DNA of 64,000 nucleotides, taken from NCBI GenBank assembly GCA_025558095.1, contig JAIVFI010000006.1:682001-746000 (forward strand), in the 5' to 3' direction. The position numbers and the translations under genes are program-made. Under the pieces are notes generated by a model. It saw only the letters and a list, made by a program, of their open reading frames with translations. It was not told the DNA's origin and made no database searches. This document shows, one piece after another, positions 20,070 through 27,306 of the stretch (its first letter is position 1; each line of letters starts with the position of its first letter). This DNA is from Hyaloraphidium curvatum SAG 235-1 (taxonomy: Eukaryota > Fungi > Monoblepharomycota).

Positions 20070-20600
20070 TCAAAGAATCGTCACTCCTTCCATCCAGCTT
20101 TCAAAATGCGCCTCCCGTCTTCTCCAATAAGCATCCAAACGTACTCGGAGGGCAAGCTCTCCCCGAGCTTTGAGGCGTAGATCAAGTCAGTGCTCGTGCT
20201 TCTCCCCAGTCTCGCGTTCACCGATAACGGCTGCTTCGGAGACAATCATCGAGGTGCTTCGGAGGTCCTCCGGCCCCCAATGGGCATGAATCCAGTCCAC
20301 ATCGACGACGTTTTTGCCCGCGTTGCGCCCGACGATCCTTGCAGTGGTTTCCGCAAGCAGAGCGTTCATCGCGCTGCGGAGGCCGTTGTCGAGAGACGAG
20401 GGAAGCGAAGAAGCCCCAATTGCACTACCTAATCCATCAGAAACGAGGTTGGATTGGGATCGAGCGAGACGAAAGCCTGAAGCGGCTTCAGCGAGCGAGG
20501 CCGCCGTCGGCTCGGGCTGAGCGGGAGCGTGCTCGAAAGTGGATTTTTGCTCGGCGGAACGCCAAGGAGCGTCAGGATACGACGCTAACTGGGCCATCAT
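20070..20600 (-). CDS. Small coding segment, weakly chromo-shadow-like; separate gene or 3' exons of the chromodomain gene
   Basis: ORF 20187-20738 plus intron 20168-20221 gives ..ARIVGRNAGKNVVDVDW..SMIVSEAAVIARGELALRVRLDAYWRRREAHFESWMEGVTIL*. Confidence 0.4.
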
Positions 20601-20707
20601 ATCGAGGATGCGAGACAGAAGTGACAAAGGTGGTCGAAGGGGTGATGACGTGGCGACCCAAAGACAAATGATCAACTGTGACATATCAGATCGATGTGGA
20701 GATCTCA

Positions 20708-22771
20708 TTACATTTTGCGCTGGGCATCCTCGTCCCATCCGCTCAGGATCGCGCTGATCGGCAGTTTGCCTTGGTTTCCCTTCGGCCGCGTAGACTCATT
20801 AGTCCCAGATCTTTGCAAACAGCTGATGCTTGGCTCACCAGCACTCCCTGGCCTCCCGGTCCGCCCATCAGCTCCCCGTTGCTCTGCTCCGCGGCCGTCA
20901 CGACCTCCTCGATCACCTGCGTCGATGACTCCTTGACCGGTCCGACCGATGGTTTGGCCTGGTTGAGAAGGCTCGGCCTGCTGCCCCTCGAGACAGCCTT
21001 CCAAGCGCGCACCTGCTCAGGTTCGTCGGCGGGGGAGGGTGACGGGATCCTGGTCTCGGGGTCCGTCCCAGCCTCGGCCTCGGGTTCCTTCGAAAGCCGT
21101 TTGGAGCGACGCGACGAGGAGTCGTCGTCCTGGATCTCCTCCCGTCCTCGCTTCTTGGGAGTTGCCGCACGAGCTGCCCGGCCCTTCGCCTTTGGGGGCT
21201 CTTCCTTGGCAACCGACTTCTCGTACTTGGTCACCATCGCCTCGCAGCCCCTGCACGAACGTTGATCAATCAGCCGACACGCCCGCACATCACCCACTTC
21301 AAGTTCGATTCCGGCTCCCAGGTCGTGGTCTTGTAGCCGACCCACTTGACCCGGTAGTGAGGGACGGGTTTGCCATCAACCATCTTGTCTTTCTTGCCGG
21401 TGATTGCTTCGACCTGGTCAAGGCGAAGACTCTGATTAGCAACGAGTCACGAGGGCTCCTATTCTCGCTCGCTTACCTCGTACTCTTTCCCCGGGGATTC
21501 GTCGTCGTCGTCGTCCGACTCGTACCCGCCGGTCGATTCCGAGCTCGACTTCTCCCCTGCCGCCTCCTTCAGCTTGAGCTTCTCGGCCTGGTTCACGACC
21601 TTCGTCGCCGCCGCCTTGGCCTTGCTGTGCGCTCCTTGTCCACCCTTCTTGGACTTGGTCGATGCGGCAGCAGGTGCGGCCGCAGCCCGAGACGAAGACC
21701 GCGTGCGCTTTGCGGGCGGTTCCGAGGCGTCCGAAGATTCCGACGGGGCGTTCTCCTTGCGCTTCCGGAGGGCCCGCTTGCCCTTTCCGGACCCCGCGGC
21801 TTCGGCCTCGATCTCGACGTCCGTGCCCTTGTCGTTCTCTTTCCCCTCCGATCCAGCGTCCGCCGCCTTCTTCCTCGGAGCCGGAGCCCGCTGCTTCTTG
21901 GGCTGCTCCCTGGTCGGCGACCCGATCTGCGATGGAAACAGCTTTGCAGTCGGCGACGCAGGAGATCCCAACTTGGATGCGTCGGCGGGCAGCTTCCTCT
22001 CCGGGGTCTTCCGACCGTCCAGCTTCGCCCCGATCTTCTCGGCGTGCTTCATGATCGCGGCGTCCAGCTCCTCGTCGTGCACGGCGCCGTCGACCTTGGC
22101 GCCCGTCGGCGGCCCTGCCTTCGCGCTTCGCACGCCGAACTCGCTCTCCAGCATCTCGCCCAGGCCCTTGATCGGCACCAACCCCGCATCGATCTTCCCC
22201 TCCACCACCTTCTCGACCCTCTCCTTCTTGAGCGACCCCCAGATCGACCCGCGGCGGGCATCGTCGCCGGCCTGCTTCTGCTCCGGCGGCGCGAGCTGCT
22301 CGCCGTGCATGCGGGCAAAGTCCTTGGCGGCGAGGGCGCCGGAGAGCAGCGAGGCGCGGAGGGCGGCGTTGCGCGCATCGCGGAGGTTGAGCGCGTGCGA
22401 GCGGATCGAAGGCTTGTAGGCGGCGGGGAGGTTGGCGGTGCCAAAGGGGTTCTCGGCGGCGGCGATCGAGGGCGAGGTGGGCAGGTCGTCGGCGTAGAGG
22501 TACATCTCTGTGGGGGCATGCAATCAAAAAGTCATCACTTCGTCGCAAGGACAATCCATGCACCGCACCCACCGTTCTCGATCTCCTCCGCGAGCCTCCA
22601 CACCCGCTCGTCGACCGCGTCCGGCACGCCCGTGCCCGAGGGCGCGTCCGGCATATCGACGACCAGCGCGCGGTACAGCATGGCGATCGACAAGCTGCGG
22701 GAACCGTACGAGGTATGCGCGGGCTCGAGGTCGCGGGGGTTGACCTTTGGCTTCGGGGGCGGTGTCGTCAT
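20708..22771 (-). CDS. TFIIS central-domain + chromodomain fusion protein
   Basis: R..SIAMLYRAL..LAEEIE..YKPSIRSHALNLRDARNAALRASLLSG..FARM..EQLAP (TFIIS_M-like). Introns 21414-21476 and 21251-21297 assemble EYEVEAITGKK..HYRVKWVGYKTTTWEPESNLKGCEAMVTKYE (chromodomain). Both ends uncertain. Confidence 0.75.
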
Positions 22772-22899
22772 GAGCTGCTGGAAGACACGTCCGTTACTTG
22801 ACTTGGACTTCAAAGCACGACCGAAAATGAATACCTGGGACTGCACTTGCGTTCCGAGGTTGATGCCGTTCGTGTTGTCGACGTCCATCGGAGCCGCAG

Positions 22900-23856
22900 T
22901 CTTGCTTTGACGTCAGCTGCGGAAGCGACAGCAGCAAGCCACGGGCTTCAACCAACCGTTTCATTAGGCTCTGCGACCAACTTGCTCGCTTCTGATTCTT
23001 CTGTCGCCTTCTCGGTGGCAGCTTGATCCTGGGAAGGGCCGCGGGAGGTTGGCGATCGGACCCGCGCAATCGAACGAACGCGAAGACCACGACGCGCACC
23101 TTCTCCGCGCGGTTTGCCACCAGATCCTGGATTTCCTCGGCGAGCATGTCGTCGTTGGCGTTGCCGGACATGGGCTGGGTGTCTTTGCGGCGTGGGGAGG
23201 GCTGGGTCGCCGGTTGGTCCTGTCCCTGTGAATCGTTGACCACCGCCAGTCAGCAACAGAGTTCACTGACACGGGCAATCTCCCGACTCACGTCAATAAT
23301 CATTTCCTGCGAAGCCTGAGGCTGGGATCCTCCATCCGCGTCCATGGCATCCGACGAAAGCAGGGGCAGCTCGATGCTCTGCGCCCCGAGAACGCCGCCG
23401 ATCAGCCACGTTCGAGCCGATCCACCGCGAAAACGGCTTACCGAGTCCTTGTCCTCCCCACCGGTGCCCTCGGCGCCGCCGGGAGCGTTCGCGACCGCGG
23501 TCCCGACCGCCACGCCATCCTCTTGGAGCAGTCCGATCGGCCCCTCCTCCGCCTCCTCCCGTCCCTCGGCCTCCTTCCCATCCTTTTCCCCGTCCTCTCC
23601 GACGGGCGGGGGCGGTTCCCCGGCCTCCACCTTCGCCCGTTCGTCGCCCGTATCCTCGGCCCCGACGACCTCGAAAGCAGCGGCCGATTCCCCGTCCTGC
23701 ATCCACGCCGCCGCGTTTTCCGCCTCGGGCCGCGCGACGGCGCTCGGGGAGGACGGCGGAGGAGGGTCTGCGCGGGACGGGGGGGTCAGCGCGGTTGCGG
23801 AGGGGGCGCGCGGCGGGGGCGCCCGGGGAGCGGTGGGACGTGCCTTCGGCGGCCAT
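22900..23856 (-). CDS. Low-complexity acidic protein or 5' exons of the chromodomain gene; apparent 1-nt insertion after ATG
   Basis: Acidic ORF 23250-23702 is open back to 23853. ATG-G-CCG-CCG-AAG at 23856 would read MPPKARP if one G were removed. Confidence 0.35.
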
Positions 23857-24147
23857 GGCGCCTGCCGGGGGTTCGGATTCGTGGGACTCTGCCTGCCCTA
23901 TCGTGGGAATCGTGGGGAAAGGCGCGGAATCCGGTGCTCGGTTCGCGACGGTTTGGTGGGACACCGGGCCTAGGCATCCAATTAGCGAAAATGTAGTCTG
24001 ATCACCGCGAACCGGGCTCGCCTCGAAACCCGTGCGATTCCCCAATTAGAAAACGGATAGTATAGCTTGATGATCCGTAGTCCGGCTTCGGCCCTCGGAT
24101 CCGCCTCCCGGCCCGCCTAAGCGTCGGCCTGCCTGATCCACCCCCCC

Positions 24148-25191
24148 CTAGGCCTCTGCCTGCCTGATCTCCCACAGGTCGCCCAGCCTGTCCTTGCCGT
24201 CGAACCCTCCGTGGCACAGGACCGCCTCGTAACCCCCGCCGTCGCGCGCGGGCACCGACGCCGCGACCCACCAACCCCTGCCCGCGGGCTTTTCGCCCGC
24301 GACCTCGCACGGCAGCCATTCTGCCTTGAGCCCGTCCTCGCCCTCGATCAACCGCAATGCCCACACGTCGTCCCAGTACTTTCCCGCTCCGACGTGCCCG
24401 TACGGGCTCGGATCGCGCTCGCCGTACAGCGCGAGGAGAACGTCCTCCTTCCTGCCGTCCAGCGACACGCTCAGCGGCGCGAACCCGAGCACGCTCCTCG
24501 CCCCCGGCCGCTTCTCTCCGATCACGTGGGGTTCCAACCAGTCCGTACCCCCGGCGGGCCACACGTGCACGTCGCCGAGCTCGGCACCGTTGAAACCGCC
24601 GAACAGGACCAAGTGCCCCCGGAGGAGGGCGAGCCCGGGCCCGCCGCGGACCGAGAAGGGCGCCTGGGGAGATAGCTGCGACCATTTCGGGGCGGGCGAG
24701 GAGAGCGGGCCGAAGGACCACAGGTCCGAGGTGCGGCCGGCGGCGGCGACCCCGCCGAAGAGGAGGAGCGAGTCGGGGGCCGCGACGAGGGCGGCGTAGG
24801 AGCGCGGGGCGGGGCCGTCGGCGCCCGGATGGCGCACGGACCAGCTGCCGCTCTTGGGGTCGAATGCATGAAGGTCCATGGATGCCAGGCCCTGGTCGGT
24901 GCCCACGCCGGTGCGGCCTGCGAGGACAAACAGCGTGCCGTTCGCGGCCGCCGCCGAGTGGCCCACCCGGGCCGACGGGGCGTTGGCGGGCGCGACCGGG
25001 GCTTCCCACTTCTTGGCGTCGACGTCGTAGGCGTGCAGCGCGGCGTCGACGGGCACGCGCGGCTCGTTCTCCCCCGAAAAGGCGAGGAATGCGCGGCCGA
25101 CGACCGCGGCGGCGTGCGACGACCTCCCGAGCGGCACGGGGCCGGAAGCGGGCAGCTGGCGCCAGGCGAGACGGAGCACGCGCGATGCCAT
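24148..25191 (-). CDS. Kelch-repeat beta-propeller protein (nitrile-specifier-protein-like)
   Basis: Repeated P..RSSH / P.ARVGH / LLLFGG / LVLFGGFNG.ELGD motifs; GERDPS..GH.GAGKY.DD. Confidence 0.85.
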   Translation of the reverse strand: MASRVLRLAWRQLPASGPVPLGRSSHAAAVVGRAFLAFSGENEPRVPVDAALHAYDVDAKKWEAPVAPANAPSARVGHSAAAANGTLFVLAGRTGVGTDQGLASMDLHAFDPKSGSWSVRHPGADGPAPRSYAALVAAPDSLLLFGGVAAAGRTSDLWSFGPLSSPAPKWSQLSPQAPFSVRGGPGLALLRGHLVLFGGFNGAELGDVHVWPAGGTDWLEPHVIGEKRPGARSVLGFAPLSVSLDGRKEDVLLALYGERDPSPYGHVGAGKYWDDVWALRLIEGEDGLKAEWLPCEVAGEKPAGRGWWVAASVPARDGGGYEAVLCHGGFDGKDRLGDLWEIRQAEA

Positions 25192-25308
25192 CGTGCCACA
25201 GTGAGTGAATCGAAATCGGAGCAAGGGCACCTCGGAATCGGAAGCGTCCCGCGCGGCGCCTGACTCACGCGTGGCAAGTAACGACGCGCGCAAACAAACA
25301 GACGCGCC

Positions 25309-27306
25309 ATGAGCGGCGCGGTGGGCGCGCCGGGACGGGCGCTGGCGGCCGCCCGCGCGTGCAGAAGACATCAATTGGGTCTCTACGCCGTGCAGAGGCC
25401 CCGTGTTTCGCCGTCGGGCTCCCTGGGCGGCGCCCAGCGGACCGCGTTCTCTTCGTGCCTAGAATACGGCCGAACAGCCCGACCATGTGCCACAAATACC
25501 CTCTTTCGGCGTCTCCTCCACGCCTCGCCCGAAGCGAATCAAACGCTGGACGTGTTTGCGGAGCGCCGGCTGGGCGGACGGCGGCGGAACCTGCCCGCCA
25601 TCGCCGAGGTCGTCATCACGTACCCGTGGCCCGGCTTCCTCGCCGAGGACCTCGCCCGCGTGGCCGCCGCCCCGCTGCCCTTCGCTCCGCCCCTTGTGCA
25701 CCACATCGACGAGCCGAGGGGCGCCACCGTCGAGGGCCTGACCAGCGTGGCCGCGGCGACGCTGTTCGAGGCGACCGTGTCGCAGTTCTGGGAGCTCGCC
25801 AGCGCGGGCCGCATATCGGAGATCCCCTCGTACGATCTCGGCGTGGTCATCGAGACCATCTGGCGCGCCAGGGACAAGCCCACGCCCCACCCGCACCGCC
25901 TGCTCTCGGCCATCCTACACGAGCTTCTCGTGGTGCGCGGCGCGACGGTGCGGGAGCAGACGCTCCTCTTTGCCGGCGTCGTGCTGGCCGATCTCGGACA
26001 CGGCGACCTCGCGGTCGCCACCGTGGCCGCCTACTGGGCCCAGGGCGGCAGCATGTCGCGCAACTGGGGCTCGCTGGCCGCGCTGGCCTACCTCGCCCGC
26101 AGCCCGCCCGACACGGCCATGGCCGAATCCATCCTCCGCTTTGTGATCGACAACGCCGACGAGCCGTCGCCGCTGACGGTCGCCAGCCAGGTTTTCCAGC
26201 GCCTGATACAGTGCCTCCCCCCCGACGGCGCCAAAGAGTGGCACGCTACCGCCCTGCACCAACGCGGCTTCCCCCGCGACCCCTTCTCCTCCGGGCCCTC
26301 GGCCTCGGAGGAGTATCTGCCCCCCCTCGCCGTCAACCGCGCCCGCCTCAACCTCGACGTCAGCCTCTCCTCGGCCCTCGCGCGCGCCGGCGACGCGGAG
26401 GCGTGCAACGCGCTGCTGGCGCGCTGGGCCCCCTTCGCGGGGCAGATCCGCGGCTCCGCCATGTTCCACCTCCGCGGCAACCCCGTCATCGCGCACTGCG
26501 CCCGCGGCGACCCCGACGCCGCCGTCTCGGCCTACGCCGAGGCCGACGCGACCTCGGAGGGCACCGCGCACGACGCCGCCGAGGCGCTGGCGGATCTGCT
26601 TGCCGCGCGGGGGAGGCGCGCAGAGGCGATGGGCGTGTTCAGGGCGCGGATGGCGCAGGTGAGCGCCGAGCACGCGGCGAGGAGGGCGAGGTGGGGGCCG
26701 GCGCCGATGGGGAGGGACGTGCTCGTCGGACGGTGGACCCGCGCGGCTTACCTGTTCGCCGCGAGGGCTTGCCATCCCGACGCCGAGGCCGTCGCGGGGC
26801 TGCTGAAGGAGCTGGAGCGGCTGGGAGTGAAGCCCGGATGGGAGGCCGAGGCGGTGCTGGGGTCGTGCTTGTTACTTGGGGAGGGCGAGCTATGGGGGCA
26901 GATGCTGGCCGTGTCGGCGGCGGCGAGGCTGCCGCTGCCGAGGGTGCTGGCGGGCGTGGCGCAGTCGCTCGCGCTGGGGCACAACATCGAGCTGATCCAG
27001 AGGCTGTGGGACGAGGTGCTGGTGCGGCTGATCGAGGAGCCGGACGAGCGGGCGAGGCTGGGGCAGGAGCCGGAGAGGGAGATGCTGGCGGCGCTGACGC
27101 CCCCGCGCGGACGGGATTTTGCCGACCTGCTGAGGGCCCCGCCGTACGCGGATCGCCCGCTGGCGGGATCGGGGCTGACGGGGAAGGATTGGTCGGAGCT
27201 GGTGGAAAGGGCGCGGCGGGAGCTGGAAGAGGTCGTGGGGGCCCCGGCGCCGACGCAGGAGGACATCGAATGGCTCGAGGCAGGGTACACGGATCCACTG
27301 GTGTGA
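25309..27306 (+). CDS. Alpha-helical repeat (PPR/TPR-like) protein, possibly mitochondrial
   Basis: 665-aa intact ORF with Arg-rich N-terminus and PPR-like segments (VIAHCARGDPDAAVSAY, LLKELERLGVKP). Confidence 0.55.
   Translation: MSGAVGAPGRALAAARACRRHQLGLYAVQRPRVSPSGSLGGAQRTAFSSCLEYGRTARPCATNTLFRRLLHASPEANQTLDVFAERRLGGRRRNLPAIAEVVITYPWPGFLAEDLARVAAAPLPFAPPLVHHIDEPRGATVEGLTSVAAATLFEATVSQFWELASAGRISEIPSYDLGVVIETIWRARDKPTPHPHRLLSAILHELLVVRGATVREQTLLFAGVVLADLGHGDLAVATVAAYWAQGGSMSRNWGSLAALAYLARSPPDTAMAESILRFVIDNADEPSPLTVASQVFQRLIQCLPPDGAKEWHATALHQRGFPRDPFSSGPSASEEYLPPLAVNRARLNLDVSLSSALARAGDAEACNALLARWAPFAGQIRGSAMFHLRGNPVIAHCARGDPDAAVSAYAEADATSEGTAHDAAEALADLLAARGRRAEAMGVFRARMAQVSAEHAARRARWGPAPMGRDVLVGRWTRAAYLFAARACHPDAEAVAGLLKELERLGVKPGWEAEAVLGSCLLLGEGELWGQMLAVSAAARLPLPRVLAGVAQSLALGHNIELIQRLWDEVLVRLIEEPDERARLGQEPEREMLAALTPPRGRDFADLLRAPPYADRPLAGSGLTGKDWSELVERARRELEEVVGAPAPTQEDIEWLEAGYTDPLV

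Follow-up and report, generated by a model that had tools for sequence, protein, structure and literature searches.

The window, i.e., the entire stretch of 64,000 nucleotides of an early-diverging fungus analysed here, carries on its minus strand a single-copy, expressed gene of 11 exons, which runs from position 23702 down to 20708 and encodes a product of ~797 aa. In this protein, the middle domain (TFIIS_M) of TFIIS, an elongation factor, is combined with a chromodomain. An earlier note on this DNA had given 20708-22771 as the limits of the gene. However, 22771 is not its start, as RNA shows four more exons upstream and the frame is open to an ATG at 23702. The continuous ORF described in that note (21459-22523) is indeed present on the minus strand, and the two short introns that it had proposed, at 21414-21476 (63 nt) and 21251-21297 (47 nt), have both been spliced out in a contig from run X1, but a third, in-frame intron at 20959-21012 had been missed. 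The features of the gene are listed below in the order of its reading, together with some features of its orthologue on Logan contig L017, which was reached through protein P0001 and is discussed further below.

23442..23702, minus strand: exon 1 (predicted), 87 aa, with the ATG at 23702, the first in-frame start of ORF 23250-23702
23379-23441, minus strand: intron 1 (predicted only), GTAAGC..CAG, 63 nt
23292..23378, minus strand: exon 2, 29 aa, with a short motif SQ..EM..ID in common with L017
23100..23225, minus strand: exon 3, 42 aa; RNA contig rec4, joint 23027/23099, cut +1
22957..23028, minus strand: exon 4, 24 aa; RNA joints 22900/22957 and 23027/23099
22835..22900, minus strand: exon 5, 22 aa; RNA joints 22777/22835 and 22900/22957
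22573..22777, minus strand: exon 6 (68 aa and 1 nt), candidate N-terminal half of TFIIS_M, ending with ..VWRLAEEIEN
22508..22572, minus strand: intron 6/7, which splits TFIIS_M, GTGGGT..CACAG, 65 nt; L017 has an intron at the identical codon position
22254..22424, minus strand: exon 7, C-terminal half of TFIIS_M, YKPSIRSHALNL..N..LR..LLSG..FA.M; Pfam PF07500
22131..22253, minus strand: exon 7, conserved stretch ..IKGL.E.. that follows TFIIS_M and is probably helical, common to the window and P0001
21477..22130, minus strand: remainder of exon 7, basic linker rich in K, A, S and P with NLS-like runs, then the acidic/serine run SSSEST.GYESDD and the first cage residue (EYE)
21298..21413, minus strand: exon 8, chromodomain core, ..HYRVKWVGYKTTTWEPESNLK; Pfam PF00385; both flanking introns confirmed by RNA
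21013..21250, minus strand: exon 9a, chromodomain C-terminal helix GCEAMVTKYEKS (21214-21249), followed by a disordered segment rich in charges; RNA contig rec2
20959..21012, minus strand: in-frame intron, GTGCGC..CCAG, 54 nt, removing 18 aa; RNA joint 20957/21012, cut +1
20839..20958, minus strand: exon 9b, 40 aa, initial portion of the conserved C-terminal module; rec2
20708..20779, minus strand: exon 10, conserved 23-aa tail GNQGKLPISAILSGWDEDAQRKM and TAA stop

The earlier note had both domains on a single transcript, and one spliced RNA contig indeed joins them. This contig, rec2 (1366 nt, run X1), extends with zero mismatches from 22334 to about 20746 and contains a TFIIS_M half, the linker, the chromodomain and the C-terminus. 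Also the intron at 20780-20838 is confirmed by RNA. Since the RNA contigs skip seven GT..AG introns, their source must be spliced RNA. At the 5' side, the junction of exon 2 (23292/23225) is indicated by a 133-nt loose end of contig rec4 at 23225, which reads sequence starting at 23292, and the frame of the predicted exon 1 is open, encoding an acidic, disordered N-terminus; the N-terminus encoded by L017 is likewise acidic. The intron at 22508-22572 has an RNA depth of 0 in its bin, and no RNA contig covers the junction between exons 6 and 7. This junction was accepted because the orthologue is identical in its exon structure and the alignment to TFIIS_M is collinear. Searches, domain scans and the single fold prediction were run on individual exons, exon by exon.

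The N-terminal module, which the earlier note had taken for TFIIS_M, is recognised as such by the Pfam profile (PF07500) in exon 7 alone (21477-22505, minus strand; 48.4 bits, with the curated cut-off at 29.2; E 1.4e-12; positions 51-107 of the 114 in the profile), and this match was also recovered in a profile scan of the genome. The ORF at 21459-22523, in which the note had located the domain, holds its C-terminal half, but the first half would lie in the preceding exon at 22573-22777. Against a reference alignment of TFIIS_M, exon 6 is collinear with the first half, with R, L and E retained at their invariant positions. Its hhalign match to TFIIS_M is in register but weak (E 0.0045, probability 7.7%), and a Pfam scan of exon 6 alone gave no match. 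In exon 7, six of the six invariant columns are kept, which brings the total to all nine invariant reference columns in both the window protein and its orthologue. Thus, exons 6 and 7 together encode a candidate complete TFIIS_M. With an identity of only about 37-44% between the two orthologues here, the preservation of these nine positions argues for selection on the usual surface of the domain. In TFIIS, Bye1 and PHF3, this domain II (TLD) is the part that is seated on the jaw/funnel of Rpb1 in Pol II. However, as the N-terminal half is too divergent for Pfam alone and scores so low in hhalign, the contact with Pol II could be weakened. An AlphaFold2 model of residues 1-190 of exon 7, built on a two-row alignment, had a mean pLDDT of 50 and showed the extension after TFIIS_M as helical, with low confidence. 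In the Pfam scan, no exon matched the TFIIS_N domain I (PF08711), the Zn-ribbon domain III (PF01096), PHD or SPOC; TFIIS_N/Zn-ribbon domains were displayed in the same kind of scan by the positive controls P0005, P0008 and P0011.

The chromodomain that the earlier note expected after splicing of two short introns matches Pfam Chromo (PF00385) with exon 8 alone (21300-21413, minus strand; 29.0 bits at a curated cut-off of 25.1, E 1e-6), and the match was again recovered in the profile scan of the genome. The intact aromatic cage and, immediately ahead of it, the acidic run, both of which the note had also claimed, are directly readable: the cage consists of Y (EYE/VE), W (VKW) and Y (VGY), as read by eye against the HP1 pattern, and an acidic/serine run directly precedes the domain as in HP1. 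Single chromodomains with a canonical cage after an acidic run are typical of readers of methylated H3K9 or H3K27. Sequence matches of exon 8 in the PDB were to the chromodomains of cpSRP43, Polycomb, HP1, Chp1 and Clr4 (E 0.003-0.03). By sequence, the domain is of the HP1/Polycomb kind, and it is too short for assignment to a subfamily or a mark. Its match to the cellular-type chromodomains of the genome is at 50-58% over ~20 aa; capture from a chromovirus was considered and rejected, as the many retroelement chromodomains of the genome do not match exon 8. Likewise, a chromo-shadow-like module downstream was rejected: the protein ends at the TAA at 20708, as in the orthologue, and the downstream ORF has no Pfam match. 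Consistently, no match to the chromo-shadow domain (PF01393) was found in any exon nor in the downstream ORF, and the only chromo-shadow match in the genome lies on another contig (C31).

When 1.84 billion representative proteins were scanned in full with HMMER, one close relative was obtained, P0001. In L017, the modules occur in the same order as in the window gene, and introns at the IEN/E and E(Y/F)E/VE junctions are common to both genes. The aromatic cage is intact, as F/W/Y, and the counterpart of the C-terminal helix of the chromodomain, NCDALLAEFEKS, is found in the same place. Exon 6 is 44% identical to the corresponding exon, with the donor at the same position, and exon 9b is 60% identical. 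The tail of 23 aa encoded by exon 10 is the best conserved part (87% identity, with the stop at the same place) and is unique within the genome. Overall, conservation between the two sequences is strongest in TFIIS_M, the acidic run before the chromodomain, the chromodomain and the tail; in addition, a KRTRSSS run is present in both linkers in the alignment.

Other searches gave no further relatives. Word-based protein searches with the 354-aa ORF, its residues 7-190 or the two-sequence alignment found nothing beyond P0001, but they are blind above ~620 aa and are therefore weak evidence of absence for a product of ~797 aa. Scans of JGI metagenome contigs with the alignment of the TFIIS_M region and with the C-terminal tail as queries found no relative, and a feature search of the ESM Atlas gave no usable match. 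In the literature searched, the combination of TFIIS_M and a chromodomain was not found, and a review of 2025 lists only TFIIS, BYE1, PPS, DIDO, PHF3 and SPOCD1 as TFS2M proteins, with two members in fungi (PMC12139180). Thus, the earlier note, which did not recognise this fusion, appears to have been right in regarding it as unfamiliar; judged by these searches, it is not a widespread known family.

The window gene is the third TFIIS_M gene of the genome. A canonical TFIIS is encoded elsewhere (L002), and a separate Bye1-type gene encodes TFIIS_M and SPOC (P0012), with a PHD-like Cys/His motif upstream (L001), which was read by eye. The TFIIS_M of the window protein is 39% identical to that of the Bye1-type paralogue (45 bits) vs. 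35% to that of TFIIS (37 bits). The genome also contains a toolkit for silencing, including a Clr4-like gene with chromodomain and Pre-SET, one chromo-shadow (HP1-like) gene, about three Argonaute/Piwi loci and several DNA methyltransferases (DNMTs). A search of the genome for EZH2 CXC was blank, which is a weak negative.

The only recognisable modules in the protein are the TFIIS middle domain, the HP1/Polycomb-type chromodomain and the short conserved tail, with disordered basic and acidic linkers between them. The data show the gene model, the two domains, their joint transcript, the conservation in a second organism and the rarity of the combination; each binding event and the direction of the effect are inferences. 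With a confidence that stays somewhat below even, we propose that the protein is tethered to chromatin and holds or restrains Pol II on methylated, probably H3K9-methylated, nucleosomes, which would make it a candidate member of the Bye1/PHF3 kind. Most likely, the protein is held at methylated H3 tails by its chromodomain, and H3K9me is the likelier mark, since Clr4-like and HP1-like genes are present in the genome and an EZH2 signature was not found. Anchoring would raise the local concentration of the TLD, which may then take the TFIIS site on elongating Pol II. By analogy with Bye1 and PHF3, Pol II would thus be tethered to marked chromatin and the TFIIS-dependent rescue of backtracked polymerase would be hindered, so that transcription entering silent chromatin would stall or terminate. 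Stimulation of transcript cleavage is not expected, since domain III is lacking. The conserved tail probably serves as a peptide on which a third partner docks. Precedents are found in the published TLDs. That of Bye1 binds the Rpb1 jaw without stimulating cleavage, that of PHF3 is required for competition with TFIIS, although a second docking domain is needed as well, and a TLD without domain III competes with TFIIS and diminishes elongation on an arrest template (PMC8526623).

Restraint and licensing are two opposite directions that the effect might take, and the published TLDs without domain III would point to restraint. As a licensing factor, the protein would have an identical architecture, but its chromodomain would bring the TLD to heterochromatin to promote non-canonical transcription by Pol II, e.g., of small-RNA precursors in a Rhino-like manner; the earlier note had drawn this analogy to Rhino-dependent transcription. 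An Argonaute hook could be provided by the conserved SGWDED tail. The Argonaute/Piwi loci and DNMTs in the genome fit this option, as do the conserved W of the tail, which is flanked by G/S and acidic residues, and the precedent of SPOCD1, another TFS2M protein, which is tied to de novo genome methylation (PMC12139180). However, a lone GW is poor grounds for postulating an Argonaute hook, and competition with TFIIS and diminished elongation on an arrest template are what has so far been shown for a TLD that lacks domain III (PMC8526623); hence, we consider licensing unlikely. An extended version, in which H3K9-methylated nucleosomes, elongating Pol II and, via the tail as an Argonaute hook, the RNAi machinery are bridged by one chain, is a speculation that we would hardly bet on. 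If true, evolution would have arrived independently at a compact counterpart of RITS or of Rhino-type complexes for co-transcriptional silencing or licensing, and an occupant of the TFIIS site would be used for the control of Pol II specifically inside heterochromatin.

It is quite unlikely that the protein is a general elongation cofactor of the Bye1 type, which accompanies Pol II along genes while its chromodomain recognises either active or transcribed chromatin by a mark or a methyl-lysine outside histones. Its TFIIS_M is nearer to the Bye1-type paralogue than to TFIIS, and its chromodomain is not assignable to a subfamily, but a cage chromodomain after an acidic run is typical of H3K9me/K27me readers, the PDB matches include Polycomb, HP1, Chp1 and Clr4, and a PHD-TFIIS_M-SPOC gene is already available in the genome for such a role. 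The divergence of the N-terminal half of TFIIS_M and the superior conservation of the tail would suit a heterochromatin adaptor, in which TFIIS_M is a degenerate helical scaffold off Pol II and the function resides in the chromodomain and the tail. The nine invariant positions, kept in orthologues that have diverged so far in this very region, make such an adaptor improbable. Finally, two adjacent genes or a mis-assembled contig might have been misread as one gene. The gap in RNA coverage at the exon 6/7 intron leaves some room for such an artefact, as does the RNA label of run X1, which is a guess. Nevertheless, it is largely refuted and scarcely credible, given the seven skipped introns, the in-frame joining of TFIIS_M and chromodomain on one contig, and the same adjacency and frame in the unrelated assembly of L017.

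Under the preferred reading, i.e., restraint of Pol II on methylated nucleosomes, the nearest relatives are Bye1 of yeast, PHF3 and DIDO of vertebrates and PPS of insects, which, like the window protein, combine a reader of histone methylation and a TLD in one chain without domain III. The TLD of the window protein is most similar to that of the genome's own Bye1-type paralogue, and the same logic may be expected to apply, i.e., docking by the reader and filling of the TFIIS site by the TLD (PMC8526623). Whereas these PHD-TLD-SPOC proteins read H3K4me3 with an N-terminal PHD, the reader of the window protein is a chromodomain located C-terminally of the TLD, and the protein lacks SPOC but possesses its own conserved tail at the C-terminus. 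With TFIIS itself (Dst1/TCEA), it shares domain II but neither domain I nor the Zn-ribbon domain III. SPOCD1 of vertebrates also is a TFS2M protein without PHD and is linked to genome silencing rather than to active genes (PMC12139180). However, it has a SPOC domain and no chromatin reader, whereas in the window protein SPOC is missing and a chromodomain is present.

HP1/Swi6, Chp1, Rhino, Polycomb/CBX and Ccc1 of Cryptococcus share with the window protein the canonical three-residue cage and the preceding acidic/serine run, but their partner domains, as well as a chromo-shadow, are absent from it. None of them is known to carry TFIIS_M. The annotation of AIPP3/BDT1 of Arabidopsis may also list a TFIIS central domain, although this was not confirmed in the literature searched, and this protein would then be the nearest functional analogue, with a BAH domain as the reader where the window protein has a chromodomain. 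AIPP3/BDT1 reads H3K27me3 in a BAH-PHD-CPL2 complex, in which the reading of a repressive mark is coupled to restraint of Pol II (PMC7718874).

Found in one other organism only and in none of the literature searched, the combination of TFIIS_M and chromodomain is thus a candidate for a direct connection of silent chromatin with polymerase engaged in transcription. The handling of Pol II in methylated chromatin, be it by restraint or by deliberate licensing, is usually attributed to multi-protein chains, among them HP1/Rhino adaptors, RITS, and effects of PHF3/Polycomb. In the present fusion, a reader of methyl-lysine and a TFIIS-like domain that docks on Pol II are united in one chain that is under selection in two divergent organisms, and such a 'Rosetta-stone' fusion predicts direct physical coupling of the TFIIS-like domain with methyl-lysine reading. 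If this coupling is true, the TFIIS/Bye1 superfamily gains a member that reads a repressive mark, and a third TFS2M protein is added for early-diverging fungi, against two in the reviews.

The gene lies on the minus strand of the window, where the open reading frame 21459-22523 is present. Domain profiles and searches for relatives were scored on single exons, and the gene model was counted exon by exon. The two domains proposed in the earlier note were both recognized by HMM above the Pfam cut-offs, i.e., TFIIS_M in window:21477-22505:- (E 1.4e-12, 48.4 bits, cut-off 29.2, profile positions 51-107 of 114) and Chromo in window:21300-21413:- (E 1e-6, 29.0 bits, cut-off 25.1). Pfam detects only the second half of TFIIS_M, within exon 7. 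When exon 6, which ends ..VWRLAEEIEN, and exon 7 were entered as separate fragments into an alignment (A2) among eight full TFIIS_M domains, the first half of the domain was covered by exon 6 and the second by exon 7, and together they retain every one of the nine invariant columns (R, L and E from exon 6; Y, R, L, N, L and F from exon 7). Profile-profile comparison placed exon 6 in the same register, with a weak match (E 0.0045, probability 7.7%). Judging from its sequence, we read this TFIIS_M as a domain II that is divergent yet complete and is interrupted by an intron. The TFIIS Zn ribbon, TFIIS_N, PHD, SPOC and Chromo_shadow found no Pfam match in any exon. Since Chromo_shadow is among these and the ORF downstream of the stop codon is also without a Pfam match, a chromo-shadow module downstream of the gene is not supported.

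The public sequencing run X1, whose record is silent on RNA versus DNA, holds 57% of the sampled words from window 20300-23300. Its contigs skip seven intervals with ends CT..AC on the plus strand, i.e., GT..AG on the gene strand, and are, therefore, derived from spliced RNA. One contig of 1366 nt spans 22334 to ~20746 with zero mismatches, and a second one contributes upstream exons.

Introns and upstream exons of the window gene
23379-23441, minus strand: intron, predicted only
23100-23225, minus strand: upstream exon, second X1 contig
22957-23028, minus strand: upstream exon, second X1 contig
22835-22900, minus strand: upstream exon, second X1 contig
21414-21476, minus strand: intron of 63 nt, skipped by the 1366-nt X1 contig
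21251-21297, minus strand: intron of 47 nt, skipped by the 1366-nt X1 contig
20959-21012, minus strand: intron of 54 nt, in frame, not predicted in the earlier note, skipped by the 1366-nt X1 contig
20780-20838, minus strand: intron of 59 nt, skipped by the 1366-nt X1 contig

Thus, a single in-frame transcript carries everything from the TFIIS_M half in exon 7 through linker and chromodomain to the C-terminus, which confirms the link between the two domains postulated from the sequence as well as the two short introns (21414-21476 and 21251-21297) on which it depended. The intron between exons 6 and 7 (22508-22572) is spanned by no X1 contig. The loose end of the second contig reads sequence from 23292 on, and the open frame extends to an ATG at 23702. 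The gene model comprises 11 exons and ~797 codons and ends at the TAA at 20708-20710. Hence, the X1 contigs and the open frame place the 5' end of the gene ~930 bases further upstream than proposed previously.

The contig depth in X1 spikes (up to 149) at window 21411-21915, with loose ends at 21499, 21517, 21824 and 21978; probably, this reflects other transcripts sharing GAC/GAG-rich low-complexity repeats rather than raised expression of the gene. Upstream of the proposed start, an ATG at 23856 (window 23780-23860) begins a long frame rich in Arg and Gly that runs across exon 1 in a different reading frame; this could be an upstream ORF, or transcription could start downstream of the ATG. 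The upstream neighbor (window 24148-25374, minus strand) encodes a Kelch-repeat protein (PF24681, E 1e-38), and its stop codon lies ~450 bases from the proposed start.

Word-based protein searches, to which proteins of more than ~620 aa are invisible, revealed no relative besides P0001. A full HMMER scan of 1.84 billion representative proteins, queried with residues 1-190 of exon 7, gave 15 matches at E <=0.001, and P0001 (317 aa, E 4.5e-15, 44% identity) was the sole match below 1e-10, which argues against the fusion being a known widespread family. Nine other matches that were examined turned out to be standard TFIIS, TFIIS_M-only or TFIIS_M-SPOC proteins. No further copy emerged from two scans of JGI metagenome contigs. 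P0001, a Logan-assembly singleton called as a single-exon ORF, ends ..STTGYESDDEEEFEV, matching the end of exon 7. On its 91-kb contig (L017), the sequence upstream of this exon reads ..VWRLAERIEN, and the intron after it sits at the codon position also used in the window. Downstream, a chromodomain extends across four exons (EFE, VEKILGKKEKELD, GKMVTHYKIKW and KNYKTMSWEPRTNLVNCDALLAEFEKS) with cage residues F/W/Y, and a charged linker is then followed by a C-terminal module that stops at the same residue as the window protein. Identity between the two loci amounts to 44% in exon 6, 37% in residues 1-190 of exon 7 (second half of TFIIS_M plus the part that follows), 60% in the 40 aa preceding the last intron and 87% in the last 23 aa; the SSSEST.GYESDD run is nearly identical, and identity in the linkers is low. 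This uneven conservation indicates that the architecture is under selection in two divergent organisms. The GC content is ~61-67% around the window gene and, by eye, clearly lower in L017. The conserved tail (..LSGWDEDAQ..) occurs nowhere else in the genome and resembles a docking peptide; more speculatively, it could be an Argonaute hook. The otherwise divergent basic linker (window 21477-22130) and P0001 both contain a KRTRSSS run (..AKRTRSSS..), slightly offset in the pairwise alignment, which is probably a nuclear localization signal or phosphorylation site.

A 2025 review of the family lists TFIIS and five other TFS2M-bearing proteins (BYE1, PPS, DIDO, PHF3 and SPOCD1), with two members in fungi, and does not mention a chromodomain (PMC12139180). 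Full-text literature searches pairing TFIIS with chromodomain terms retrieved no title or abstract on such a fusion, which is rare, with two organisms so far. The window protein differs from TFIIS by the lack of the defining domain III, from Bye1/PHF3 by the lack of PHD and SPOC, and from HP1 by the lack of the chromo shadow, whereas it follows the logic of Bye1/PHF3 in pairing a reader with a TLD. In plants, AIPP3/BDT1 may combine a TFIIS central domain with a BAH reader of H3K27me3; if so, no other protein would come closer in function, and the conceptual novelty would be somewhat lower.

The TLD of Bye1 binds the Rpb1 jaw like TFIIS but does not stimulate cleavage, because domain III is missing (PMC8526623). 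PHF3 dislodges TFIIS from elongation complexes and lowers elongation on an arrest template, for which its TLD is needed but does not suffice by itself, as a second docking domain is required (PMC8526623). In the window protein, a TLD is present, domain III was not found, and the chromodomain is the obvious second docking module. By analogy, the most economical reading is that the protein is tethered to chromatin and occupies the TFIIS site on Pol II. The chromodomain would concentrate the protein on methylated nucleosomes, and the TLD would then hold Pol II and block TFIIS-dependent rescue; we infer every binding step. In the opposite reading, the protein may license heterochromatic transcription. 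The fusion makes a clear and testable prediction. H3K9me is the favored, presumed mark because of the silencing toolkit present in the genome, where we found a chromo+Pre-SET (Clr4-like) locus, a second Pre-SET locus, one chromo-shadow locus, approximately three Argonaute/Piwi loci and several C5 DNA methyltransferases. The EZH2 CXC motif gave no match in a search of the genome, a result that cannot be read as absence of EZH2.

The 31.9-Mb assembly contains exactly three TFIIS_M loci, i.e., the window gene, a canonical TFIIS and a Bye1-type PHD-TFIIS_M-SPOC gene. In identity and score, the window TFIIS_M is slightly nearer to the Bye1-type copy (39%, 45 bits) than to TFIIS (35%, 37 bits). A product fragment of the Bye1-type gene (P0012) carries TFIIS_M and SPOC, and at its locus (G000:C39:240717-244088) a PHD-like Cys/His motif, noted by eye, precedes TFIIS_M. 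Most chromodomain matches in the genome sit in retroelement-sized ORFs. Exon 8 is unlike these and resembles the cellular-type copies; therefore, its recent capture from a chromovirus is unlikely. Loci L005-L013 (on contigs C1, C8, C9, C12, C16, C17 and C41 of G000) contain many copies of a retroelement-sized frame, often 1498 aa long, whose chromodomains are nearly identical and score 53.2 bits each, which suggests a young chromovirus-like family. On the contig of the window, ~108 kb before it (G000:C6:573736-579213), three equal-scoring chromodomain matches with one internal TGA each are spaced by exactly 2673 bases, as if a chromodomain-bearing unit were repeated in tandem.
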